Shown in pieces: positions 601-28,363 of a DNA stretch of 32,000 nucleotides. A program made the translations under genes and the position numbers. The DNA is taken from the NCBI RefSeq assembly GCF_000400465.1, contig NW_008806274.1, positions 90,244 to 122,243 of the forward strand, in the 5' to 3' direction. The notes below the pieces were generated by a model that saw only the letters and a program-made list of their open reading frames with translations, did no database searches and had not been told where the DNA came from. Positions within the stretch are counted from its first letter, which is position 1. Every line of letters begins with the position of its first letter. The stretch is from Wallemia ichthyophaga EXF-994 (lineage: Eukaryota > Fungi > Basidiomycota).

Positions 601-1296
601 TTAAACTGGAACACGCTTGAATCCACTACGCTTGGTGTATCCTGCTTGACGTTTATAATGATCATTTTCGTCACGCTTTGAAGCACCTCCTGCGAGATCA
701 CTGACGATTGGAATCTGACGCTTCATTGAGCCACCGCCGAGGAGCCTGTCTTCGTCAGCCTTCTGATTGGGTTTTGCGTCACGCTTTGAAGCACCTCCTG
801 CGAGATCACTGACGATTGGAATCTGACGCTTCATTAAGCTACCGCCGAGGAGCTTGTCTTCGTCAGCCTTCCCATCTGGTGTATTTGAAGTTGGCTTCGG
901 TGCTTCTGCAGCTTCAGCTGGTTTAGCGGAAGATGGGGAGGCCTTCTTGTCATCCATGTCAACTTCAGCTGACTTGGCAGGAGATGGAGAGTCACTAGAA
1001 GTCTTCTCGTCATCCTTGGCAGCTTCTTCCTCCATGGCTTGCTTGATTTGCTTCTTAGCCTCATCTGGAATGCCAGTCTCGACTGGGCGTGCACCCGTTG
1101 AGGAAGTTTCAGCTGGAGTCTCAGCCTTGGAAGTAGCCCATGCTGGTGGTTCGCTGAGAGTTTGATTTTTTAATGATCCTTCTGGTACCTCTAGCGTCTT
1201 GTCGAGACCTTGGAGTAAATCTCCGCCTTCTCCGCTTGGCATTTGCGCTAAGACTGCAGATATGAGTGCGAGTGCGGCGTATAACTTGAGATGCAT
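601..1296 (-). CDS. Secreted Kex2-processed repeat protein (KEP-like peptide precursor), 231 aa
   Basis: Intronless ORF. Hydrophobic signal peptide MHLKLYAALALISAVLA, acidic/Pro-Ser linker, then seven KR dibasic sites delimiting two identical QIPIVSDLAGGAS peptides plus short C-terminal peptides. Confidence 0.85.
   Translation of the reverse strand: MHLKLYAALALISAVLAQMPSGEGGDLLQGLDKTLEVPEGSLKNQTLSEPPAWATSKAETPAETSSTGARPVETGIPDEAKKQIKQAMEEEAAKDDEKTSSDSPSPAKSAEVDMDDKKASPSSAKPAEAAEAPKPTSNTPDGKADEDKLLGGSLMKRQIPIVSDLAGGASKRDAKPNQKADEDRLLGGGSMKRQIPIVSDLAGGASKRDENDHYKRQAGYTKRSGFKRVPV
669..871. repeat. Coding tandem duplication with a 108-nt period (669-763 and 777-871)
   Basis: Near-identical copies of cgtcacgctttgaagcacctcctgcgagatcactgacgattggaatctgacgcttcatt...cttcgtcagccttc, offset by exactly 108 nt (36 codons). 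Confidence 0.95.
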
Positions 1297-1668
1297 CTTG
1301 AGTATGGTGTTTAAGGATGAGATACTTTATTTCAAGGAGTAATTTAATTGCTTATATTTAATCGAAAAATTTAGTTTCACCTTTTCGAGGTATGAATGTG
1401 ATCGAACGCGCACTAAATCGACAAAGGAATGCTGCTCAAATGCGAGTCAATTGTAAGCAATAAGTTGCAGCCTTAGAACAGTATAAAAGGCTAGTACGTT
1501 GTCATTAACTTGACTAACATGTTCATTTGTGAAGATGTGAGAATTTGTTGTTTTATTGATTTTTCGCATACTATTAGCAAAGCTTGTATGCACTCATAAA
1601 CAGAAATCAGATAATAGTAATCGCGTTTGTAAATTCATAAACGTCATTTACATGCAGTGTTAAATATT

Positions 1669-2448
1669 TTAGACCTTTCTGTATCCTGGTGGACTTCTCT
1701 TAACAGATGGGTTGCGTCTTTGGGCTTGCTGACTATCCTCTTGAGAGTCCATTTCTTGTTGTTGCTCCATCATTGGAGCTTCGGTTTGCTCTTGTTGATC
1801 TTCCTCTTGTGGTTGCTCCATCATTTGCTGTTCCTCAGCCTGTTCTTGAGATTGATCCATTTGTTGTTGTTCCTCAGCTGGCATCATTGATCCTTGCTCT
1901 TCTTGTGACTGTTCCTCACCTTCTTCTTGTTCTTGCTCTTGTGGCTGTTCCATCATTGGTTGCTCATCTTGTGATTGTTCCATCATTTGTGGTTGCTCAT
2001 CTTGTGCCATCTCTTGTTCTTCAGGTTGCATTTCCTCTTGTTGCATCTCCTGTTCTTCAGGCTGCATCACTTCTTCTTGCTCTTCCTGCTGCTGCATATC
2101 TTGCTCTGGATTCATTTCAGCAGTCGTAACATCGCTGCCTTCTTCATCCTTGGTGACATCAGGCTCAGCCTTTTTAGCTTCTTGAGCAGCAGCTTGAGCA
2201 GATGGCGATGCCATAGCAGAGCTGCTCGAAGATGCGGACGAGGATGTGGAAGTAGCGGTGGATGAAGGTGAAGTCATTGAGCTGGTTGATGTTGGTGTTG
2301 GTGTAACTGCAGGTGCAGCTGGGGATGCTGAGTCCATACCTGGGACCAATCCACCAAGTGCATCAGTAAGAGCGCCTAATGGACCCAATTGGGCGCTGGC
2401 TTGTGCTGCTAAAGCTGCAATGACACCGAGAGCTACGCTGAGACGCAT
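1669..2448 (-). CDS. Secreted, highly acidic Gln/Glu/Met-rich low-complexity protein (about 259 aa)
   Basis: ATG at 2448 gives signal peptide MRLSVALGVIAALAAQASA. It is followed by a Ser/Thr-rich segment (possible O-glycosylation) and a long Q/E-rich region with repeated QPEEQEM and MMEQ units. Confidence 0.8.
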   Translation of the reverse strand: MRLSVALGVIAALAAQASAQLGPLGALTDALGGLVPGMDSASPAAPAVTPTPTSTSSMTSPSSTATSTSSSASSSSSAMASPSAQAAAQEAKKAEPDVTKDEEGSDVTTAEMNPEQDMQQQEEQEEVMQPEEQEMQQEEMQPEEQEMAQDEQPQMMEQSQDEQPMMEQPQEQEQEEGEEQSQEEQGSMMPAEEQQQMDQSQEQAEEQQMMEQPQEEDQQEQTEAPMMEQQQEMDSQEDSQQAQRRNPSVKRSPPGYRKV

Positions 2449-2806
2449 CTGTGTCAACACAATATCAGTCGCGCTCTTTTATATCTTCTTTTTCACTCAC
2501 TGTTGATTAAGAGAGTTGGGTTGAAGAGATGAAGAGATAATCCCTCACTAAGCTTAATATTTGTATCTTTTTCATCTTTGGAATGTGTTAGTTTGTCTAT
2601 GAAGATAAAGCACGCAGTGGGGCATGCACTAAATTGATCGCAACCAGTCTTCTAGAAGCGTATTACTAATTATAGATTCCTTGAGAGTTATTTAGATTCG
2701 AGCCCGCTGATCACATCTCTAGACCGGGTCGTTTCAAATTTTTGCAGATCAAAGATGTAAATAAGACAAATGCAGTGCGATTCTAATGAATGAGATTCTA
2801 TGCTTT

Positions 2807-5045
2807 TTATAAGTGTTTGTAACTCCTTCCTGAAGTATTCGTGTGCCTTAAAAGTGTGATGATGGCTGATGGTGTAATGCCCTCGATACGCTTAGCAGCA
2901 CCCTTGAGCAAAGGTTAGAGATGAATATGAGCGATATCTCCACCTACTATCGACAATGGCTGCACCTTCTTCAATCTTTCGCGCACCTCGTTGGACAGTG
3001 TTGGCACGGCGTCATAATCTAACGCTGGCGATAGTGGCAATGTTTCTTCCGACATAAAAGCTCTAAGATCTGCATTTTGACGTTTGAGGTGTGGCTTGTA
3101 CATAGCTGTTGTATGGGATGTTAGTTTATTGTCGAGGGTGAGAATGAGGGAAAGTGAGACACCTACCCTCAATATTGACACGCTCGCGTAGACGTGGATC
3201 AATCTTTGCTAATGCAGGCAAATGTTGAATCATGTCGTCAACAGTAGCTCTAACATCTGTGCCTATTTTCTTGAAAGTGAGTATATCATACGCGCTCCTC
3301 GACTTTCCATCTAGATTAACCAGAATGCCTCTGTCTCTCCATTTTTCGGGCGACATTCTGAGACTTTCGAGGGTCTCTGTGACGTGGTCCATCTCCTTTT
3401 TAGCAGAGTTGAACACACTCCAACGGGACTCAGACACGGCGCCGATATTGTAACCTTTCTGCGTCAGTCTCGTGTCAGCGTTATCGGCACGTAGCGTCAT
3501 TCTGTACTCGGATCTCGCAGTGAACATTCTGTAAGGCTCTTGGGCACCGCGGGTGATAAGATCATCGACCATGACGCCAATGTATCCATCAGCGCGTGTG
3601 AGGATGAGTGGAGATTTATGATGAGCTGCCAAAGCGGCATTTATACCTGCGAGAATACCTTGCGCACCAGCTTCTTCATACCCCGTTGTGCCGTTTATCT
3701 GACCAGCTAAGAAAAGACCTTGCACACGCTTCGTTTCTAGTGTGGCACTCAATTCACGCGCATCGATGTGGTCATACTCTACACCATAACCTGGCATTAT
3801 CATTTCTGCTTTCTCTAGTCCGGGAATCGACCTTATCATTAGATTTTGCTCCTCTTCGGGAAGTGTTGTAGATATCCCGTTTGGATAGATGACATCGCTG
3901 TCGAAACCTTCAGGCTCGAGCCAAATGTTGTGTGAGTCTTTAGTGTGGAAACGAATGATTTTAGCTTCTATCGATGGACAGTAGCGGGGACCATTAATAG
4001 TCTCTCTGATGTGAAATGTTTTGTGGAGATTGTTTCTGATAATGTTGTGCGTTGTGGGGATGGTATGTGTTTGGTAGCATTGGATTTGGTTATTCTTCGT
4101 CATGTGAGATGTGTGATAGAGTGTCTTGACCAACCTACCTCCAAATGGACATTCTTGTTAAGGAAGCTGAATGGTTGGGGTGAATCGTCACCCTCCTGAA
4201 CAATCATACTTGTAAAGTCTATTGTGTGTTTTTTTAGACGCGCAGGAGTACCCGTTTTGAGTCTGCCTAAAGCAAAACCAGCTAGGCGGAGTGATTTAGA
4301 TAGACCAGAGGGGGGACTTGCGGGATCACCTTTGCGGCCAGCTTTGAAGGATTTCATACCGATATGAATTTCACCATCTAAAAAGGTGCCTGTACATAGA
4401 ACAACTTGAGAACATGGAATGACGTGACCGTTATCGAGACGAACGCCACGGACAGTACCCCAAATTTGAGAGTTTTGAGTGTTGTGAGCGTTGCGATGAT
4501 CAAAGACCAAATCATGGACAGAAGCAGCGTGTATATCTAAGTTTTCGATGGAATTGAGAGTGTTCTGCATGTTTGATTTGTAAAGGGAGCGATCAATTTG
4601 AGCACGAGGACCCTGTAAAGTGGGGGAATAAGGTTAGATAGCCGAAGATGCCGAGAATACGCCTAACTAACATAAACAGCAGGACCTTTTGACTTGTTGA
4701 GCATTTTGTACATACAACCTGAAACATCTAGGAAATTGAAGAGTTTTAGGGGTGTTGAAATGTAAAAGTGAATCACTCACCACCAATCCTACCCATTAAA
4801 CCATCTAAAGCGTCAATTTCACGTACTAAAGTGCCCTTTCCAATACCACCTAAGCTTGGATTACATGACATTACACCGATAGTATCGGGATTTTGAGTGA
4901 GTAGAGCAGTTCTAGCACCTGCCCTTGCACTTGCTGCAGCGGCTTCAGAACCGGCATGGCCACCGCCAATAACGCAGACGTCGTAAGCGGGGGGAGTGGG
5001 GAGTGTGGATAGACGTCTATATCCCACTTTCAAAAATGATTTCAT
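2807..5045 (-). CDS. MTO1: Mitochondrial tRNA U34 5-carboxymethylaminomethyl modification enzyme (GidA/MnmG family), multi-exon
   Basis: Motifs [70 protein letters not shown] and [11 protein letters not shown] across spliced exons. The last exon [15 protein letters not shown] ends at TAA 2807-2809. Confidence 0.97.
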
Positions 5046-5136
5046 AAGGAGAATAATTGAAATTTAAATTTTGATGTTTGTAGATCGTCGTCGATTAACA
5101 GGCGATTTCTTTGTTGAGCTGCAACGACCAAGAGAG

Positions 5137-8100
5137 ATGAAAGTGGGTGAATGATACAAGCGATGGAAATAAAACTTACAAAATAATTCAGATCGAGTTA
5201 CAAAGCTGGGTAGAGGCGTTGGAGAAGTACGATGCAGGCGACTATATCCACGCACTGCGCCAATTTTCAACGATGCAGAGCCGTGGACAGTCATCTAAGA
5301 TAGAGTTCAATAGGGCAGTTATACACGCTAGCCTTGGTGATCAAAAGGGTGCAACTGAGTTGTACAATTCATCACTACGCATTGACCCATACTTTGCAAT
5401 CGCCCACTTCCAATCAGGCGTTTGTAACTTTATGCGGGGCAGATATGAGCACGCGAGAAACGACTATGAAGCTAGCCAGGCGCAGCTTAGAGGGAATCCC
5501 CACATCGACTACAGTCAACTCGGCTTGGCTTACAAGTTAGAATCCGCAAATATAAACTTCAATATTGCTTTGACCTTTTACTACTCAGGCAGGCCTGATG
5601 ATGGTATAAGTCATATTCAATTAGCTAGAAATGGCGCGTCCCTCGACCAAAACAGCGTCATCGATGACTGCTTGCGTGATGAAGCTAAGGTACGCTCAAT
5701 CTCAGGCACGCGGTCTAGAACAACTAACAAATATTCATCCAGGGTTATATGCCTTACTCTGTTCAACCAGGCGTGGTTTTTAGACCTTCAGACTCTCAAA
5801 TAAAGAATCTTGAAAAGAAAGACTTCATTGGTCAGGCAAAAGTGGTTTACACTGACGATGACGGTACCAGTCCTGATATACCCCTCACTCAATCCAACAA
5901 TGACAACAAAGATGATGTTCCTCTCACTCGTAGATTACCCGGTGGTGGTGGTACTCTAAAGCGCAATCCAACTCATTGGCAGCCAAAACTACTCCGTCGT
6001 CCCACCCTTGGCTCTCGTAAACAAAGCAGCGCCGAAACAACTCCTGTGTCTTCTGGCGCTACAACTCCTGTCAATGAAAAGGGTGGCTTCTTCGGTCTCG
6101 TTAGACAGAAAACTGAACGCAGAAAGGCTCCAACTGAAGAAATGCGCACAAAGGCTGGTTTGACCCCTGATGAAGCTGCCACTGGTCCCAAGCAAGCTGC
6201 TATGCTTTCACGAGCACGCACCCTCGGTTCGGCTACTCTTGCAGAGAAGCGCTCCAAATCTGAACAAGATGTACCTTCTCAGGCCAATCAACAATCCCTT
6301 ACTGCCGCTGCTACTGCTACCACTGCTGATACTCACCCAAACAAGGGCTACACTCTGACAGATAATGGTAATAGTGATACTCCCTTTGCATCAGATACAG
6401 ACGAATCGCGTACTCCTTCACGTGCTCCTTCCCCTCCTCCTTACAATCATACACCTCAACCACATCAACCATCGAATTTGCATCACTCCCCTTCACAACC
6501 CCAGCTTGCACCTAGTAGAGCACGATTCCCAACTCGTAAAACATCACTGAGATATGTCAGTAGTAAATTCACTAAGAACGGTTCTTCAAATATACCTCGA
6601 CAGGAGATACGTAGATCGCGCTCGTTTAATGAGGGTGACGATTTTTCATTAGCTTATAATGTCTCAGATGGCAGTGAGATGCAGGCGACGAAGGCTACTC
6701 AATCGAATCAAGCTCCAACCAGGAGCAATACTCTTCTAAGCAAACTATCTGGCCGTTCAGGAGTCAATGACAGCAACATGAACATGAATCATGAACACCG
6801 TAAGGGCAAGCCACCTGCTATCAATACACTGTCCAATGTGCCAGCTGGTTGGCCACGCTCAGCTGACACAAGTCCACTCTCATTATTCCAGCAAACTCAA
6901 TCGCATAGAGCTCCCCAAATCCCTGCTCTCAGTATTGGCGATGCACTGATGCAAGCAGCAGAGCAAAAAGAAGAGCAGACAGCGGATGATGTGGTAGAGA
7001 AACCTGACCAAACAATGGAAAAAACTAGTCAGATAGAAGAATCAGAGGAATTGGAGCAAACACCAAAGCCTACTGAAAACATTGAATTGACTGTCACGCC
7101 ATCAACCCCATCACAAATGCCAGATAAGGACTTTTCAATTAAGTTTGATGAAAGGACTGACACTATGTACGATACGCAGAATGACACGTCGGTTCCATCT
7201 TCAGTGTCTGACAATTCCATGACCAATCCATCCAACGACTCTGGTGACAACAATGAGAGAGGATCACCGGTAGACGCGTTGACTACGTTGAGTGGTGGCA
7301 GTCCAAGTGCCCAAGGTGCCACAGGTGTCCATAGTGCTGCCAACGCTGGACCCTTCAAACAACCAGCACCACTTCAGGTCCAAGAAAAGCCAGCGCTGAG
7401 TCGCCAGGCTTCTGCATTGCGTAGACGCGGCACGTATGGCAAAGTACAAGAGCAGCATCAACAACAACATCAAACCCAACCAAAGCAAGGGATAGCTATC
7501 GACGTTTCTGACAAGATGCGCAAGATGGGCATAGAAGAGGGCAATGAGGAGAATGACGGGGGATTTGACTCGGCAATGATCAAGGGGATGTCGCCCGTAG
7601 AGCAGAGTTCACTGAATGCTGAGAGATTGCTTGAAAAGGGAGTGCGAGTGACGCCAGGTTCTTTGCATGCACAGACAGTGCTCGAGAGTTTGCAAGGTGT
7701 GAACGGTGCACCAATACTAACATCAATGCAACCAGCACAAGAAGTACACGGAATACCATCACCTACACCCCTACCTGCATCCACACCACCGAATGCCGCT
7801 TCTGCACCTCCACCACGGTCGCCGGAAAGCAAGTCGAGTAGATCAAATGGTTCTAGTCCACAATTGAAAGTGCGTTTTAAGATACATTACGGAGATGATG
7901 TGAGAGGGATGCTGGTTAGCAATGAGACTTCGTATGATGCCTTCTTGAATCACGTAAGTGGAGGTTAATTGATAGATAGCTGAATCTAACACTACCAAGA
8001 TACTCCGTAAGTTTGACAAAAGCGCTGGTAGCTTTAGAGTTCGATTCAAGGACGAAGATGGCGTTAAAATCACCGTTCAGGATCACTCTGATTTGGAACT

Positions 8101-8176
8101 TGCTATTGATACTGCGAGATTGCACGGTAATGGACGCAGTGACGGAAAATTAGATATTTGGTGCGAGGATTTGTAG
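5137..8176 (+). CDS. noxR: NADPH oxidase regulator NoxR/p67phox-like, copy 1 (TPR domain, long disordered linker, C-terminal PB1; about 963 aa)
   Basis: Exons 5137-5142, 5192-5689, 5743-7953, 8000-8176. IELQSWVEALEKYD...DPYFAIAHFQSGV...LRGNPHIDYSQLGL, activation-like motif DFIGQAKVV, PB1 VRFKIHYGDDVRGM...FKDEDGVKITVQDHSDLELAI. Confidence 0.9.
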
Positions 8177-8349
8177 GGCTTACACTGGACACTGGCTGTA
8201 CAGGTACTGGACTTATAAATTTTCATTCTTTTATAACATGACAATATTTTTAAAACAAGTCGATCGGATGTCGCCACATTCGAGGGTCGCTATCGCGTGA
8301 GGAAGGGGTGTTCCTGGGATAGGCCTAGACAGGTTTAAATTAAACGACG

Positions 8350-10790
8350 ATGAGCTTGAAGGTGTGAAAGACGTGTTTGTAGACTAGTAATCTAATGAGT
8401 TCAGCAGGATGAGCTTACAATTTGGTCGCGGGCTCTGGAAGCATACGACCGAGAAGATGTAGCTCAAGCGGTGAAGAGCTTTAAGACAATCGCACATACC
8501 TCAAAGATACAGTTTGTGGGTAGATAAAAGAATACAGAAACCTTTTTCCTAATCTAATCTAACCAAATCAGAATCTGGGCATGATTTATGATGCACTTGT
8601 TATGAGCACAGAGGCGTTGAAATGCTTCAACCGCGCCAGTGAGCTCGATCAGTATTTGGCTGTATCCCACTTCCAAGCTGGTGTTTCGTACTTTGTAGAT
8701 ACGATGACTTGATATATTGAAACACGCGGACTAACATAAAAAAAACAGAAGCAAAACGAATTCAATGCAGCTATTCACAGCTTTTCTCTCTGCTTAGAGT
8801 GCTTGCACGATAATATAACCATGTACGCACTGTCCGCACTGTCCGCCACTTGTCGGCACTCACTGACGCCGGATGTTTTCAGCACTTACACCCAGCTTGG
8901 TCTCAAGTACAGTCTTCATTACGCTGAGGTTCAATTCAACCTTGGTCTCTGCCTCATTGCCGCCGGTCGCAGAGATCACGGTCTTAATAAACTTCGCTTG
9001 GCACTGATCAAATCTGAGAAACCAGAGCACGCGGTCATTAGTAAGGTGTTAAACAATGGCGGGATTGTGTGTGTGTCGTGTTTTGTCGTTTAGTGTTAAC
9101 TTTATTACGCTCAGGCCACTTCTCTCTTCGCAGTTCCTATTGGTACGCTGTTCCAACCACCAGAGGATAAGATAAAGAATATGGATGTCAAAGTGGGTGA
9201 TGATAACGTATAAACTTACTCAACTGATCAAAACCTAGGATTATCTCGGCCGAAGTCAACTTATCAGCACCTCCCACTCGTACGACCTCTCCGTAAGCTT
9301 TCAAACATTTCTCGCTAACAAATTAACCTGACGTTATCCCTCCGCATTCTTTACATCTTGATATGCTTTAGACTGACTTTGCCGGTGTCAAACTCGTCGA
9401 TCACAAGGAAAGTATCAGCAATCGCATCGGGAATTTGGAAAGATCAAAAACAGCTCCATCTGCGAAAACTGAATCAACATCTATACCAATTTTACGCTCT
9501 AAAACATCATTCAGAGCCAACCTCGAAAGCAGCATATATCCCAAGTCAGCCGTTTTCACAGAAGATATTTTAACCGACGAGACTACTGATAGAACTTCAA
9601 TTTCTGAATCTATTTCAAATCCTACTCAAAGTCATATTCTTGGTCGAGCATGTAAGTGATGCAATGTGGCGCCTTCATTTTAGTCCATCTTCAGGCGCGT
9701 TTGGTAATTAATGAAACTGATGAAAATCTAGACTCTGAAGATAACAACCATTTCCAAAACCATAATAGTGAAATGTACTTTACGCGTAGGCAATTCGAGC
9801 AACCAGCCGCTGAGCTTGAGACAAACATGTTAAACGTGAGTGTTTTGATAAGTGGGTTTGGAGATGGAGGTAGCTGATTACTCTAATACAGGGCCAAGTT
9901 AGTGATTTACACATTGCGCTCGACATGAAGCGTTCTTCACCAATTCTCACTCTCCCACTACACAAATCCAGATCACCGCCACTACCAACACCATCAACGT
10001 CGGCATCTTCGGAGGATAGCGAAAGGAGCTTTAAGAACGCGATGGATGAGAAGCTTAATCTTAAGCCAAAGTCTACGCGCCCAACGTTCATCAATCGTTC
10101 ATTCGGCACACTCAGAACAAAGTCATCGAATCTTATAAACACTAAACGCAGCTCAACATCAATACCAAAGGGTTGGCCATCTACATCTGAGAACGGTACT
10201 GGGACTCCAATGGCCGTGTCACCAATTGGACCCATCTCATCGCCCTTGCCAGGCTCATTCGTTAGCACGGGACCAGGTACTGCCCGCGGCACACCTTCTG
10301 AATCCGATACACCAACGTCGACTTTCCTCGAGTACAAACGTAGTGTACCTTCATTCAACATAAGGATTAAGGTGGGTGTGGGCTTTTGTTCCAACTCGCA
10401 CACATACTGACTTGGATTGTAGATTTTCTTGAATGAGGATGTTAGAGGTATGATTCTTTCCGCCTATGAAACGTCGTATGAGAAGGTAAGTAAGTTTACA
10501 TGGAATTTTTACTTCATCTCAACTCGCACACCAGTTCAGAAGCAATGTACATGCCAAGTTTCCCCACATCGAAGCAGACAGACTGGCAATCAGGTTTAAG
10601 GATGAGAATGATCTGGTGTGAGTGGTTATGTGGGTGTTGATACTCTACTAACGCTCCCCTCAGTACTATCCTCGACGAATCCGATTGGGAAATGGCTATT
10701 GAGTGTGCACGCGTAGAGGCAGAGATGAGAGAACGATCTTATGGATCGTTGGAAGTTCACTGCGCGCAGAGAGTACGTGCACGTGGATGA
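8350..10790 (+). CDS. noxR: NADPH oxidase regulator NoxR/p67phox-like, copy 2 (about 12 introns; TPR + PB1)
   Basis: Manual splicing gives MSLK|QDELTIWSRALEAYD...DQYLAVSHFQAGVSYF...ITYTQLGLKYSLHYAEVQFNLGL...FAVPIGTLFQPPEDKIKNMDVK|DYLGRSQLI...IRIK|IFLNEDVRGM...FKDENDLV|TILDESDWEMAIE, ending at TGA 10788-10790. All junctions are GT-AG. Confidence 0.85.
8827..8864. repeat. Short degenerate 9-10 bp tandem repeat (gcactgtcc) inside an intron of noxR copy 2
   Basis: gcactgtcc gcactgtcc gccacttgtcg gcactcact is visible directly. Confidence 0.6.
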
Positions 10791-10975
10791 ATAAACTACT
10801 AGCAGCAGCACAACAGCACAGGATACCGATATGCAAGGCACAGTTTTACGCTTATTTATTACACATTTTACAGAAATACACTTACAAAGAATATTGTTGT
10901 ACCATTGCATTTAACACATGTTATCGATTCTTATCTTAAGCTTGATCTTGGTTCGTTACTGTGATCATCGACATC

Positions 10976-12570
10976 ATGACAAAAGAATTGAATCCAAAGA
11001 CAAAGGAGTACAGCTTCTTTGGTCCGATTGGTACTGGCGCGATAACGATTCTCACGCCAGTTATCACCTACTTGCTCTACTACGCCTGTCCAAACTCGTA
11101 TGATGATGGTACGTGCAAGCTACTCCAGAAACCAGCGCTTGGTAGACTGGCTGGAAGCGATTTCTGGTATTCTCTCTTCACGCTTGAGGCTTTTGCTGTA
11201 TATCTCGCTTGGTACGCTTTCACTGTCTTCGCATGGGCTATTATACCTGCACAATGGGTACGCGGTACACAGCTGCGTGATGGATCGTACAAGTACTACA
11301 AGATGAATGCGCTAGCCACTCTTCTCATGGCTACTGGTTTGGCTGCTGGACAGATTCTGCGCGCAGGTCCAGAAGGATTCACGTATTTTGCCGATAATTG
11401 GATACCTCTGCTCACTGCATCCCTCGTCATGTCTATCGCTCAGTCTGTGTTCTGCTACGTGTCCTCCTTTACGCAAGGAAAACTACTTGCTTTGGGCGGC
11501 AACACGGGCAACTGTGTGCATGATGTGAGTGGGGATATTTGATTCTGAGGTAACCTGTGCTCACTAGCTATAGTTCTTCATCGGTCGCGAATTAAACCCT
11601 TCGATTGGATCATTCGATATCAAGACTTTCAACGAACTCAGACCAGGTCTTATCCTCTGGTGGATACTCGATATCTCTCTGGCATGCAGACAGTTGGCCA
11701 CCTTTGGCCAGCTGACCGACTCGATGATTCTTGTCGTCGCGTTCCACGGCTGGTATGTGTTTGATGCACTGTACAATGAGGTGTGTGCGATGTTTGTTAC
11801 TCAGTGCATCCACTCACAGCAACTCACACTCCGGACAGTCAATCATTCTCACCCAAATGGATATTGTTCATGACGGGTTTGGTTACATGTTGGGTGGGTA
11901 AAGTGCTTTGGTTGTATTTGACTCACTGACCACTTTTGTCTCAACAGCCTTCGGCGATCTCACCTGGGTGCCTTTCACATACTCCCTGCAAGCCCGCTTT
12001 CTTGCATACCATCCAAATATTTTAGGTCCATCTGGAAGTGCTGCAATTGCCGCTTTGCAGCTGTTAGGTTATTACATCTTCCGCACATCCAACGCCGAGA
12101 AGAACGAGTTCAGGAATGGCAAGAATCCAAAGAGTGAGTAGGGTGATTTGTTGGCTGTGTTTCTAATCACATAAAACGCACGATAGACCTCCAGTACATG
12201 CAAACCAAGAGGGGTACTAAGCTACTCACGTCTGGATGGTGGGGTACACTGAGACACCCCAACTACCTCGGTGAGTAGGGTGCGTAAATGACACTCCCAG
12301 TCCACTTACATCCTTCAAGGCGATCTCATAATGGCGTTGGCGTGGAGTCTCCCAACTGGTTCACTCACACCATTGACCTATTTCTACCCAGCTTACTTCA
12401 CCGTCTTGCTCATCCATAGAGCTCTTCGTGATGATGCACACTGTCGAGAGAAGTAGGTGGCGCACAGTGATTATAAGTGAGCCAGCTAATTTGGTTGTTC
12501 TAGGTATGGCGATGATTGGAATGCGTACGTTGAGAAAGTGCCGTACTGCATATTCCCGTATGTGTTCTGA
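10976..12570 (+). CDS. ERG24: Delta14-sterol (C-14 sterol) reductase, ERG4/ERG24 family, multi-exon
   Basis: N-terminus [15 protein letters not shown] resembles Erg24. Also [64 protein letters not shown], and end [22 protein letters not shown]. Confidence 0.92.
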
Positions 12571-12666
12571 GATGACTTGAGAGTATTTGCAAGGGTTTTT
12601 TATATAAATATTATTATTTACATTTTTCAATCACCTATCACATATTGCGCGCCTGTCTTGTGTGCG

Positions 12667-13288
12667 ATGACAAAACGCGACATTGAAGCAACTCAACCGG
12701 ACGGAACGACAGAAAAAGAAAGCAAAATGACCAAAGCCACTCAAGTAACATCACTTCTCGTTAAAAAGCTCTGTCCACAAGCGCAGCTCCCAGCGCGAGG
12801 AAGTGCATATGCAGCTGGATATGATTTGTTCTCAGTCGAGAAGAAGGTAATTGGTGCTGGTGACAAAGCTCTGATTGATTTGGGTATTTCTATCTCAGTG
12901 CCTGCTGGTACATACGGTCGTGTTGCACCTCGTAGTGGATTAGCAGCTAAACATCACATTCATACTGGCGCTGGTGTCATCGATGCTGATTACCGCGGAC
13001 GAGTGTTTGTTTTGTTGTTCAACTTGTCACAGAAAGACTTTGAAAGTGGGTTGGTGTTGGCTTATGGCTGATGGCTGCTAGAAGCTAGCGTGACGCGTAA
13101 ACGCACCCTCTAACATACTCTCAACAGTCAATCAAGGCGATAGAGTTGCTCAGCTTATTCTCGAAAAGATCGAGACTTTCCCCGTAGAAGAGGTGGAGGA
13201 ATTGAGCGAGACTGTGCGCGGTGCAGGTGGATTTGGAAGTACGGGTGGATATGGTGAGGACAATGCACAAGAAAAAGCGCAAGGGTAG
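12667..13288 (+). CDS. DUT1: dUTP pyrophosphatase (trimeric dUTPase), one intron
   Basis: Motifs [35 protein letters not shown] and [10 protein letters not shown]; stop TAG 13286-13288. Confidence 0.97.
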
Positions 13289-13352
13289 GCTGTGTTGTGT
13301 GTTGTAGCATCATTATACCATGCATAAGCATTGTGTAAAAATTACAGATAAA

Positions 13353-14503
13353 TTACTTGTCTACTTGCATATCGCCGTCTTCTTCATCCTGGTCATCACT
13401 CACCCACTCCTCACCTTCATCCTCCTCCTCATCTTCATCCGCATCCCCGAATGGCTTTGTTGGAATATTGGAGGATTTCAGCGTGGATAGCAGTTCAGTG
13501 ACATGCTCTAGCAGCGGCTGGTCGTCGTATTCTACCTCTAGATATATCTGCGTTATTTGTTTTTGTCAATGTGGGTGTGATTGTGCTATTCTTTACCCAC
13601 CTTGGCACAACTCTCTAAAGCGAATTTAGACTCGGGCCAAGCAACTTCTTTTGGTCTTGGTGGGGTGTTATTGCTGCCGATGCCATCTAATGGAGTGACA
13701 TTTCCATCGCCTTCGAGGAATAGTATCCAGCCAGCGATATACCACGTCTCAGGGTCATGGTCATCTACGGCGAGTGCGGTTTTTGCGATGTCGAGGGCAT
13801 TTGTGAGATCGCCAAGCTCAACAAACACCTTGGCTAACGACCGCATGGATTCGGTTGTAGGAAACATGCTATCTGAAATGGGAAGCTCTTTCCAGCAGTT
13901 GTAGGCATTGAGGGCGTGTTGAAGGGATTGTTGGGCTGGCTGCTGTGAGGATATGGAGTGTGAAGCGAGGTTTGTATGTATATCGCAGTCTGTGCTGTCT
14001 ATAGAGAGTGCCTGGTTGAGGTAATCGAAGCTGGCTTGTTGAGCGTCTGGAGAGAAGCATAAATCAGTCATGTACAGCTCTGCTAAACTGACGAGAGTTG
14101 CTGTCGCCTTTCTCTTGAGATCAGTGGTCTGTTCGCCGGCGTCACTCTGCTGTCGCTCAAGCAGTCCAAGTATACTCTCAAACGCACTACGGAAACACTC
14201 CAACGAATTCTCACCGCCGTCTGCCATTTGCCCAAGATATAATTTAGCATCGACTTCTCTCTCCAAATCACCACAATTGGCCAGCCTAAAGAAATCTTCG
14301 TAGGCTGCTTCTGGGTTGCCTAGTTCTAGATTACACAGTGAACGAAATTGTAAGCCATCTGCGTTATCTGCGTCTTTTTCGAGAATTTGTTCCGAGTGCT
14401 GAAGTGCCTGCTCATACTCCTGCTGCGAGATGTGTATTAATGTTTTCTGTAGTAATTCTGCGAGTATTTCTGATGGCTGCGACGTTGGCGCTGTGTCGGC
14501 CAT
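13353..14503 (-). CDS. ACL4: TPR-repeat protein with acidic tail, probably the Rpl4 assembly chaperone Acl4
   Basis: TPR-like helices (LYLGQMADGGENSLECF, LVSLAELYMTDLC, ETWYIAGW). After one intron, the last exon has EYDDQPLLEHVTELL and a D/E-rich tail ending at TAA 13353-13355. Family assignment is from recalled architecture. Confidence 0.75.
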
Positions 14504-14865
14504 TTTTGCTGCTGTTGGTGGAAGACGAGAGTGAGTAGAAATTGAAGGAAAATCATGTGATAATTGAAGTGGTCAGAGTGTGGCCGTGGAGCTGTCTGTT
14601 TAGACTTATTCAATGCTGAGATCGGCACACGCCTCCAAATACAATCAACAACATTCAGACGTCATCGCCACCGGACTGATAGCAACAGAGTTTATAATGT
14701 AATATAAGAATCCCATCACTGTAGCATATGGCGCTTTTAAAAGCCTTTTATCGGCCTAAAGCCGTTCGGTTAGCATCCGGCACATGATATCGGGGAATGT
14801 GTCTAGAGTATTGCGTGCTGCGTCTTTCCAAACAACAGCCAGCATCTATAAACTAGTTGAACACT

Positions 14866-15734
14866 ATGGAACACTGCTGCAAATACATCGCAAGCTTCTC
14901 CTCCCAAGCACCAAAAGGGATCGAATCTACCATCGCCGAGCATAAGGTGTACATAACATCCCCAGATCACTCACAGAACGATATCGTAGTTGTAATCATC
15001 CCTGATATTTTTGTAGGTGGTTGCTAGCTGCAGGGAATCCCTTTGACACTCCCACTCCGACTGCCAGGGATGGTCACTCACAAACACCCGCGTTCTCGCT
15101 GACGCTTACGCTGCACAAGCAGGCGTGCGTGTATACGTCCCAGACTTCTACGCCGGCGACCATGCACCATTCGACAAGACCGCACTGAAGAATTTGTGGG
15201 TGAGACACATTCTCATGCGCAAAAAATACTCAGACAAACTCCCCTTACAGCGACCTCAATCAGTTCATCAGCAAGCACCCCCCACGCGAGAAGCGCGACG
15301 AGGTGGAGCACGTAGCTAAAGCCATCAAAGAGTCCTCGAAAGCACACCGCTTGGCAGCTATCGGGTTCTGCTGGGGTGCCCCCTCTGCCCTCTACATGGG
15401 TCGTCAAGGAGGAGTGGCTGATGGCGTGTCTTTCGCCCACCCTTCGCTCGTTCAAGATGATGATTTTAGCGCTCTCGCCAAGCCTGCCATGTTCATCTGC
15501 GCGGAGCATGACCCCATTTTCACAAAGGAGATGGAAAACAAGGCGAGAAGTATCATGGCAGACAAGGCAAATACACAGGGTGATAACAGAGTTTACTCCA
15601 CTTGGCACACCTTCCTCGGTACTCAGCACCACTTTGCCACTCGTGGCGATGAAGACGATCCTTACACCGCTCGCGCTATGAAAGACGCCCAATGCCTCGC
15701 TAGCAACTTCTTCAAGAGCTTTCGCGGGGATTAG
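14866..15734 (+). CDS. Dienelactone hydrolase family alpha/beta-hydrolase, copy 1 (two introns)
   Basis: MEHCCKY...IPDIF|GWSLTNTRVLADAYA...VYVPDF, nucleophile GFCWG, AEHDPIF (Asp) and GTQHHF (His). Confidence 0.9.
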
Positions 15735-16017
15735 CGGGGTGTTTTGATGAGACTACATCAATGAAACAATATGAATGAAGAATTAACAAGAAATAAATAA
15801 ATCAACGACCACATAGTCATTCAAATGTATCAATCTAAGATAACTAAAATTTTCTTTGTCTCGGGTGTTAGAAAGTCACATTCATCAGCTTAAATATCCA
15901 CGCATACATTCGCAGCCGAGACAGCCGACACACGGGACAATTGAGACTAACTCAAAATGACGTAGTGATTACCTAATCGCGGTTACCTTACAACGACCAA
16001 CATCAAAATCAATCAAA

Positions 16018-26852: not shown

Positions 26853-28363
26853 TTAACGATCAACCTCACCAAAGACTAAATCGCTCGTCCCTATGATCGC
26901 GCTGAAAATTTTCAATAAGCTATATGTGGCTATGGAAGACAGTTACTTACACCATGTCAGGGAGGAAATGGTGGCGCGACATAAAGTCAGCACCAGCCAA
27001 ATGTGCAAAGCCAGGCGCGCGGATCTTGCACTTGTAAGGTCTGTTGGTGCCGTCGCTGATGAGATGCACCGCCATTTCGCCCTTTGGCGCCTCGATAGCA
27101 GAGTAAGTCTCACCCGCAGGCACTGCATAACCCTCCGAGAAAAGCTTGAAGTGGTGTATCAAGCTCTCCATCGACTCCTTCATCGACGCGCGTGGTGGAG
27201 GGACAATCTTGTGGTCGTCGATCTTGTACGGTCCAGGCGGCATCTTGTTGCAACACTGCCCGATGATTCTGATGGCCTCTCTCATCTCCTGGATACGGCA
27301 GATGTAGCGGTCGTAGCAGTCGCCGTTCTCCCCGACCGGTATGTCAAAGTCGACCTCGTCGTACTTCTCGTATGGCTGCGTCTTGCGCAGATCCCATGGG
27401 ATACCGGAGCCACGCAGCATCGGGCCTGAGAAACAGTAGTCGAGGGCCTCGTCCGCTGTCACTCTACCGACACCGATGGTACGCTCTTTCCAGATACGGT
27501 TGCCGGTGACAATCTCTTCAATCTCGTCAATGCGCGAGCTGAACTGGGTCGCCCACTTGTGAATGTCCTCGAGGAGGCCGTGGGGAAGGTCGAACGCTAC
27601 ACCACCCGGGCGGATGTATGCGGCATGGAGACGCGCGCCGGAGACTCTCTCGTAGAACTCCATCAGCTTCTCTCTCTCTTCGAAACCGTAAAGGAAGGGA
27701 GTGAGTGCACCGACATCCATGGCGTGTGAGAGGACAGCCATGATGTGGTTAAGAATGCGGGTGATTTCGGAGAAGAGAGTGCGAATCCACTTTGCGCGCT
27801 CTGGGACATCAATGTTGAGCAGCTTCTCGACGGCTTTGGTGTACGAGAGTTCGTTGGTCATGGCGGAGGAGTAGTCGAGACGGTCCATGTAGGGGAGCGC
27901 CTGGACGTAGTTCTTGTACTCCATCAGCTTCTCAGTACCGCGGTGGAGAAGACCAATGTGTGGATCGGCTCTGAGGATTTCTTCACCGTTAAGCTCGAGG
28001 ATGAGACGGAGGACACCGTGGGCAGCTGGGTGCTGGGGACTGTGTGGTGGATGTGTTAGCGTGTGTGTGTGCGTGTGTGCGTGTGTAGCCACCGCAACTC
28101 CAAACGCACCCAAAGTTAACTGCACAACTAGTGAGCTATTTGAACACAAAATGAACATTATACGCACCCGTAAAATGACGTAAATCTGCGTCTTTTCTGT
28201 CGCCGCTCTCTTTGAGAATATCCTCTGCACTTAAATCGTGCATATCCTCAACAGTGGCAGAGCTCGAGGCTCTGCTCGATGTACTGAATCTACTGAGATT
28301 GCTGGTAGCAGCCACTGGCTTTGGAAATTTCAAGCAATTCCTTATTGAGTTGAAACGAAGCAT
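26853..28363 (-). CDS. NDUFS2: Mitochondrial complex I 49 kDa subunit (NDUFS2/NuoD homologue)
   Basis: [76 protein letters not shown] and terminal DLVFGEVDR* at 26853-26855. Confidence 0.97.
28058..28086. repeat. Imperfect (GT/CA)n microsatellite in an NDUFS2 intron
   Basis: gcgtgtgtgtgtgcgtgtgtgcgtgtgtag. The ORF track translates it spuriously as THAHTHTHT. Confidence 0.85.

Follow-up and report, generated by a model that had tools for sequence, protein, structure and literature searches.

Two tandem NoxR genes in a basidiomycete, and a private arginine-to-histidine allele in the Rac-binding hairpin of the second

Introduction

The N-terminal TPR domain of p67phox, an activator of NADPH oxidase (Nox), contacts Rac through residues Ser37, Asp67, His69, Arg102, Asn104 and Asp108 (PMC3314626, citing Lapouge 2000). 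Asp67 and Arg102 form the critical pair, and both are kept in p67phox and in its paralogue NOXA1 (PMC2121648). For the fungal activator NoxR of Epichloe, mutation of the equivalent arginine (R101E) abolishes the binding of RacA (PMC8146680). Position 108 is not without relevance either, as judged from a human D108G substitution that has been proposed to be pathogenic (PMC11539424). Here we describe a stretch of 32,000 nucleotides from Wallemia ichthyophaga EXF-994 (contig NW_008806274.1, positions 90,244 to 122,243), referred to below as the window, which encodes two NoxR genes, copy 1 and copy 2. An initial annotation of this DNA had noted that the Rac-binding hairpin of copy 2 differs from that of copy 1 by Arg to His, Gly to Asp and Asp to Thr changes, and had proposed a division of labour, with copy 2 as a Rac-independent activator, a decoy or inhibitor, or a binder of another GTPase. 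We find that the histidine is private to the window isolate. Copy 2 is probably a maintained and still Rac-responsive NoxR paralogue, of which this isolate carries a private, possibly weakening R101H allele.

Results

The hairpin histidine is private to the window isolate

The window was compared with three samples, L001 (SRR25393958), L002 (SRR25394048) and L007 (SRR25394091, a 58-kb contig), each of which is approximately 99.4% identical to it; the match to L007 spans window positions 842-15801 at 99.4%. All three have CGC at 8806-8808 in place of the CAC of the window, giving the copy 2 hairpin L-R-D-N-I-T-I-T-Y with Arg101 instead of His101. The difference is a G>A transition at a CpG. When the spliced N-terminus of copy 2 was run in a word-indexed protein search, no annotated orthologue appeared and the sole match was P0001, a reading frame from a sister sample (L001/L002) that runs through the hairpin intron and reads L-E-C-L-R-D-N-I-T. 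P0001 was called as an open reading frame by the gene caller because this intron is open in frame.

Arginine is also present in more distant relatives. With a profile built from both copies, two orthologues of the long copy 1 exon were recovered, on contigs L009 (12.3 kb, 47% G+C) and L010 (21.9 kb, 32% G+C), and both contigs carry both paralogues, in the order GidA (minus strand), copy 1, copy 2, ERG24 seen in the window. The copy 2 hairpin of L009 is L-R-D-N-I-S-I-T-Y (CGC GAC AAT ATC TCA AT/C ACC TAC, the stroke marking the splice junction) and that of L010 is L-R-E-N-S-I-I-N-Y (CGT GAA AAT TCT ATA AT/A AAT TAT). The Arg to His change is therefore private to the window isolate and the normal copy 2 allele of the species is L-R-D-N-I-T-I-T-Y. 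The critical arginine, which copy 2 had been thought to have lost, is altered by this single G>A and is read in L001, L002, L007, L009 and L010. By parsimony Arg is ancestral, with His having arisen inside the window's species. The Arg allele is seen with both Lys179 and Arg179 and so lies on at least two haplotypes.

We consider it very unlikely that the A at 8807 stems from a sequencing or assembly error in the source record and that the isolate truly has Arg. Only one base is involved and every other sequence available has G there, but over 15 kb there are about 90 further differences between the window and L007, which marks the window as a distinct haplotype, where a real variant is nothing out of the ordinary. 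Between the window and L007, copy 2 shows five synonymous and two nonsynonymous differences (H101R and K179R), and copy 1 shows eight synonymous and ten nonsynonymous differences, the latter mostly in its disordered middle. Two of the copy 1 differences (5405 and 5514) are near functional sites: H74Y in the A-I-A-H-F-Q helix, and S110N directly after the hairpin tyrosine.

Hairpin sequence and splice junction

Translation confirmed the hairpins of both copies as first described, together with the coordinates of the histidine codon and of the intron that splits the Ile106 codon (Table 1). His101, Asp102, Asn103 and Thr107 of copy 2 align with Arg102, Gly103, Asn104 and Asp108 of p67phox, and with the intron excised the hairpin has the same length as that of p67phox. 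An intron at the same position and in the same phase (AT/N, within the Ile107 codon) is found in the copy 1 orthologues on L003, L004 and L005, three related environmental contigs, and in the copy 2 orthologues on L009 and L010, which supports the splice junction 8822/8883. An alternative splice that would restore Arg or Asp was considered and rejected, as the histidine codon is 15 nt away from the exon end and paralogues and orthologues share the position of the intron.

Being in frame and without a stop codon, the hairpin intron of copy 2 would, if retained, add 20 residues to the Rac-binding hairpin. The corresponding intron of L009 (about 6672-6728, 57 nt) is also open, while that of L010 carries a stop. 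Copy 1 of the window species (5192-5689) is without three TPR-region introns that its orthologues have (compare L003, L009 and L010), which fall after R-Q-F-S, after S-S-K-I-E and within the hairpin, and copy 2 (8408-8515) is without one, after S-F-K, that L009 and L010 have. The loss of several adjacent introns together suggests conversion by a spliced transcript.

Table 1. Positions of the two NoxR genes and their elements in the window
Feature	Position	Strand	Details
NoxR copy 1	5137-8176	+	963 aa; exons 5137-5142, 5192-5689, 5743-7953, 8000-8176; GT-AG introns
Copy 1 hairpin	5486-5512	+	L-R-G-N-P-H-I-D-Y; Arg101, Asn103 and Asp107 correspond to p67phox R102, N104 and D108
Copy 1 activation motif	5821-5847	+	D-F-I-G-Q-A-K-V-V; Val at p67phox Val204 position
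Copy 1 PB1 domain	7864-8173	+	spliced across intron 7954-7999; Pfam PB1 residues 878-961, E 1.5e-9, 38.1 bits (above cut-off)
Spacer, copy 1 stop codon to copy 2 start codon	8177-8349		173 nt; tandem genes on the same strand
NoxR copy 2	8350-10790	+	582 aa, 13 exons
Copy 2 exons 1-7	8350-8361, 8408-8515, 8572-8694, 8749-8822, 8883-9045, 9115-9192, 9239-9292	+	
Copy 2 exons 8-13	9372-9651, 9732-9835, 9892-10371, 10423-10485, 10535-10617, 10664-10790	+	
Copy 2 hairpin	8803-8889	+	L-H-D-N-I-T-I-T-Y; 8803-8822 joined to 8883-8889; CAC at 8806-8808
Single-base variant	8807	+	A in window (CAC, His101); G in three other samples (CGC, Arg101)
Copy 2 hairpin intron	8823-8882	+	60 nt, GT..AG, phase 2; splits Ile106 codon (p67phox Ile107) AT/C; CACTGAC branch site
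Copy 2 activation motif	9239-9265	+	D-Y-L-G-R-S-Q-L-I; Leu at p67phox Val204 position
Copy 2 PB1 domain	10354-10769	+	spliced across three introns

Rac-contact positions across the NoxR family

To place these residues in the family, an exhaustive search was made with the copy 1 TPR exon, and 116 representatives of the NoxR family, one for each cluster at 50% identity, were aligned to p67phox, the numbering of which is used here. Position 67 is Asp throughout (116/116) and position 102 is Arg in 113, with His in two and Leu in one. Asn104 is found in 111 of the 116. Position 103 is Gly in 92 and something else in the other 24 (Ser 8, Glu 7, Asp 3, others 6), and position 108 is divided between Asn (56) and Asp (53), with Thr in a single representative and other residues in six. 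Among the positions surveyed, only Asp67, Arg102 and Asn104 are strongly conserved. The copy 2 hairpin of the window is thus unusual for the family, with His where 113 clusters have Arg102, Asp at 103 as in three clusters and Thr at 108 as in one. Gly103, which had been counted as part of the Rac contact, is absent from the published list of contacts (PMC3314626). Position 103 is no Rac contact and varies freely, while position 108 takes Asp or Asn equally, so that Thr108 is a genuine if mild oddity. Ten of the 116 clusters, from several other lineages (Orbilia, Ceratobasidium, Rhodotorula), have an acidic residue at 103.

The two cases of His102 are both from Rhodotorula, for which four NoxR homologues (P0034, P0080, P0019 and P0064) were compared. 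R. toruloides reads H-H-N-H-T-I-D-Y and R. dairenensis H-D-N-H-T-I-D-Y, while R. babjevae and R. taiwanensis have R-E-N at the hairpin; within this one genus, two species thus have His as the key residue and two have Arg. The presence of His at the Arg102 position in retained Rhodotorula genes indicates that it has become fixed elsewhere in genes that are still kept.

These comparisons bear on the effect of R101H in the window isolate, which probably lowers the affinity for Rac without necessarily abolishing binding. We think it unlikely that the window allele of copy 2 is null or strongly weakened, such that R101H abolishes Rac binding, copy 1 covers for it and the change is a first step towards loss of the gene. 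The arginine is required in p67phox and in Epichloe NoxR (PMC2121648, PMC8146680), the change is both derived and private, and a CpG transition is a common kind of mutation. The changes made in those proteins were, however, R102E and R101E, which reverse the charge, and Arg to His is far milder. The remainder of copy 2 is intact, with no frameshift, stop or lost splice site, and K179R is its single further amino acid difference from L007. His is moreover fixed in the two Rhodotorula species that retain the gene.

Age of the pair and selection on both copies

The copy 1 orthologues, from L003-L005, L009 and L010, all read L-R-G-N-x-(F/H)-I-D-Y. The copy 2 lineage keeps Arg102 together with the equivalents of Ser37, Asp67 and Asn104, and in L010, the most distant copy 2 orthologue, the hairpin has the normal fungal contact set. 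Parsimony suggests that the acidic residue at 103 is a trait of the whole copy 2 lineage, and that Thr108 is younger than the divergence of the L010 lineage, where the common Asn is found. The three substitutions first noted thus differ in their conservation: Arg to His is private, Gly to Asp is matched by Asp or Glu in all the orthologues, and Asp to Thr is shared by the two closest species with Asn in its place in L010.

The TPR domains of the two copies are approximately 33% identical to each other, both in the window and in L010, indicating that the duplication predates these species. Between the window and L009 the ratio of nonsynonymous to synonymous divergence (dN/dS) is approximately 0.07 for copy 2 and 0.09 for copy 1, values that are approximate since dS is saturated; over the TPR-plus-activation region dN is 0.062 in each copy. 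Both copies are under purifying selection, and the tandem pair is kept in at least three species. Pseudogenisation of copy 2 was considered and rejected, as the gene has an undamaged reading frame, intact splice sites and a low dN/dS. Of the strain-private decay that the initial annotation had named as refuting its reading, the first half is borne out and the second is not: the change at the key residue is private, whereas the gene that carries it is under strong purifying selection. In a neighbour-joining tree of 118 TPR domains neither copy was placed reliably, both being long branches that joined other long branches, and the two were never sisters in 100 bootstraps. A single scan of JGI metagenomes gave only one unrelated generic TPR protein (L006).

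A second alternative is that the copy 2 lineage changed its partner, its hairpin binding Cdc42 or another Rho GTPase or working without Rac, so that the paralogues are split by GTPase input. All four copy 2 sequences have Asp or Glu at 103 where all copy 1 sequences have Gly, and the discrimination between RacA and Cdc42 by Epichloe NoxR rests on Ala32 and Gly35 of the GTPase versus Lys and Ser (PMC5785021), so that the lysine of Cdc42 could in principle be accommodated by a new acidic residue in the hairpin. The pair has also been retained over a long time, and the TPR domain of copy 2 evolves faster at depth, with 58% identity between the window and L010 as against 79% for copy 1. Yet Arg102, Asp67, Asn104 and Ser37 are all kept in the copy 2 lineage, and an acidic 103 recurs in the other NoxR lineages surveyed above, making a change of partner improbable. 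Its most specific form is a re-tuned copy 2 in which Asp/Glu103 accepts the Cdc42-specific lysine, the tandem pair separately couples two polarity GTPases to NADPH oxidase and R101H is a natural variant of the second input; this we regard as a rather long shot.

Domain organisation of the two proteins

The N-terminus of copy 2 aligns to residues 1-207 of the human p67phox TPR domain (1HH8/1E96) with an E value of 5e-26, and that of copy 1 to residues 8-207 with an E value of 1.3e-23. Both contain the four-TPR N-terminal domain, for which Pfam reports TPR_1 and TPR_2, and between TPR3 and TPR4 both have a hairpin insertion that matches p67phox in length. The hairpin arginine is present in copy 1; in copy 2 it is His in the window allele and Arg in the three conspecific samples and two orthologues. 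The equivalent of Asp67, in the TPR2-TPR3 loop, is Asp in both copies and in every orthologue, and both copies also keep the equivalents of Ser37 and Asn104.

The activation motifs are as originally described (Table 1), and in both proteins they are preceded by the lysine that corresponds to Lys196 of p67phox (K-D-Y-L-G-R-S-Q-L-I in copy 2, K-D-F-I-G-Q-A-K-V-V in copy 1), as expected of the activation domain. Leu at the Val204 position, as in copy 2, has been reported for the NoxR proteins of Magnaporthe and Fusarium (PMC2121648). Copy 1 continues with a long disordered middle and a C-terminal PB1 domain, for which the PB1 matches in the PDB are TFG, Bem1, PKC zeta and Cdc24. The PB1 domain of copy 2 scores 20.8 bits in Pfam, under the cut-off of 23.6 bits; it is 38% identical to that of copy 1 (E 5e-17), and among PDB entries it matches the PB1 domain of TFG. 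Both copies have basic residues of the p67phox type, namely a strand-1 lysine (F-K-I-H-Y, I-K-I-F-L) and R-F-K-D-E, their equivalence to Lys355 and Lys382 being judged by eye. A Pfam scan found no SH3 domain in either protein. At the sequence level, both genes have all of the NoxR/p67phox features sought, with the hairpin Arg in the window allele of copy 2 as the exception.

The disordered middles of the two proteins, which are otherwise unalignable, have a motif in common, V-P-A-G-W-P in copy 1 (6841-6855) and I-P-K-G-W-P in copy 2 (10165-10179), with I-P-K-A-W-P in copy 2 of L009. This may be a conserved docking motif.

Gene structure and neighbourhood

All 12 introns of copy 2 are GT-AG introns of 46-80 nt, most with a branch site of the CTAAC/CTGAC type. 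The window as a whole, with approximately 45% G+C, short GT-AG introns and housekeeping genes, is fungal DNA. Its other genes encode MTO1/GidA, a sterol reductase of the ERG4/ERG24 family, dUTPase, a BRCT protein, the 49-kDa subunit of complex I, a SWIB protein and a WD40 protein. The order MTO1/GidA (minus strand), copy 1, copy 2, ERG24-type sterol reductase and dUTPase is also found in L007, L009 and L010, that is, in three species that range in G+C content from 32% to 47%.

The complex I subunit is 83-86% identical to proteins of Tremellomycetes and Agaricomycetes, from which the source would be a basidiomycete without a close annotated relative. This nuclear gene (26947-28230, minus strand) accounts for a peak of 56% G+C at 27-28 kb. 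One of its two best database matches is labelled as the mite Medioppia subpectinata, and is probably fungal DNA within a mite assembly; it may hint at the habitat of the source fungal lineage. Elsewhere, a 108-bp unit is repeated 1.9 times with 96% identity at 665-871, within an open reading frame of 231 aa on the minus strand (601-1296) that has no Pfam match. An exact look-up of two open reading frames encoded in the window found neither on record.

Discussion

In its normal form copy 2 has Ser36, Asp66, Arg101 and Asn103, and so every strongly conserved Rac-contact residue. We therefore favour the reading in which copy 2 is a maintained, Rac-responsive NoxR paralogue, and judge it somewhat better than even; it starts from what is shown here, namely the architecture of the domains, their conservation, purifying selection and the private status of the variant, and from these predicts the binding behaviour. 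The hairpin and loops of the TPR domain of copy 2 would bind Rac-GTP, the motif D-Y-L-G-R-S-Q-L-I would activate a Nox catalytic subunit, and the PB1 domain would dock onto a partner of the Bem1 or Cdc24 type, providing a scaffold as in other NoxR proteins. Since positions 103 and 108 vary among NoxRs, the lineage-wide acidic residue at 103 and the recent Thr108 are more likely to tune affinity or partner preference than to abolish binding. In the window isolate R101H would then weaken Rac binding, perhaps partly.

Several points weigh against this reading. The Rac, Cdc42 and Nox genes of the source fungus lie outside the window, and the four haplotypes seen in total are too few to give a frequency for the His allele. 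Thr at 108 is rare (1/116), and taken with the report on D108G this means that Rac binding may already be reduced in the window species and L009. The acidic residue beside the key arginine, conserved in all copy 2 orthologues, could mean a changed partner, and the TPR domain of copy 2 has diverged faster at depth.

The interpretation given in the initial annotation is thus partly supported. Two old, diverged paralogues that are maintained in at least three species fit a division of labour, but the argument from loss of the arginine falls, and a functional split should not be carried forward on that residue. Nothing in the present data shows copy 2 to be a Rac-independent activator, a decoy or inhibitor, or a binder of another GTPase. 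A copy 2 that no longer bound Rac would have offered a case from nature of a Nox activator that acts independently of Rac or as a decoy. As it stands, a tandem NoxR pair under constraint in a basidiomycete lineage offers a natural system in which to study how duplicated Nox activators divide their work, and the natural Arg and His alleles of copy 2, together with the Arg and His species of Rhodotorula, are ready material on how strictly the arginine is needed. The survey also shows, over 116 NoxR clusters, how often each residue occurs at the six Rac-contact positions and at the hairpin positions beside them.

A literature search for NoxR paralogues and for NoxR1/NoxR2 found no paper on a tandem pair that is both conserved and diverged. 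A second NoxR-like gene is not unique to the window lineage, since two NoxR-like proteins are present in Mycena amicta; the modestly new part is the conserved tandem pair with TPR domains approximately 33% identical.

Among known systems, fungal NoxR, for example that of Epichloe festucae, resembles both copies in its four-TPR domain with a hairpin insertion, a motif of the D-Y-L-G type, a disordered linker, a C-terminal PB1 domain and the lack of SH3 domains. Copy 2 further shares the M-S-L-K start and L-D-Q-Y-L-A-V, and TPR identity to canonical NoxRs is 40-47%. Fungal NoxR is, however, one gene, whereas here there are two diverged tandem paralogues, of which copy 1 is unusually long at 963 aa and copy 2 has Asp/Glu103 and Thr108 in its hairpin, with His in the window allele at the arginine whose R101E mutant loses RacA binding. 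Human p67phox (NCF2), whose TPR domain is known with Rac-GTP (PDB 1E96, 1HH8), aligns over the full length of this domain with a hairpin of equal length, and Ser37, Asp67 and Asn104 are kept in both copies. It differs in that identity is only about 31%, in having SH3 domains, in having His69 where these proteins have Tyr, as do most fungal NoxRs, and in the His, Asp and Thr of window copy 2 at 102, 103 and 108.

In Rhodotorula, R. toruloides (GEM06286.1) and R. dairenensis (GAA5866303.1) share His at the Arg102 position, and the H-D-N of R. dairenensis is that of window copy 2. There, in contrast, His is apparently the species' own residue, the congeners R. babjevae and R. taiwanensis have Arg, and Asp108 is kept. 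Vertebrate p67phox and NOXA1 are likewise duplicated Nox activators that divide their labour between oxidases, with Asp67 and Arg102 kept in each (PMC2121648), the same pattern as is seen here at the level of the copy 2 lineage. That pair, however, stems from an independent duplication in animals, is not in tandem, and is one in which NOXA1 differs from p67phox in its C-terminal domains.

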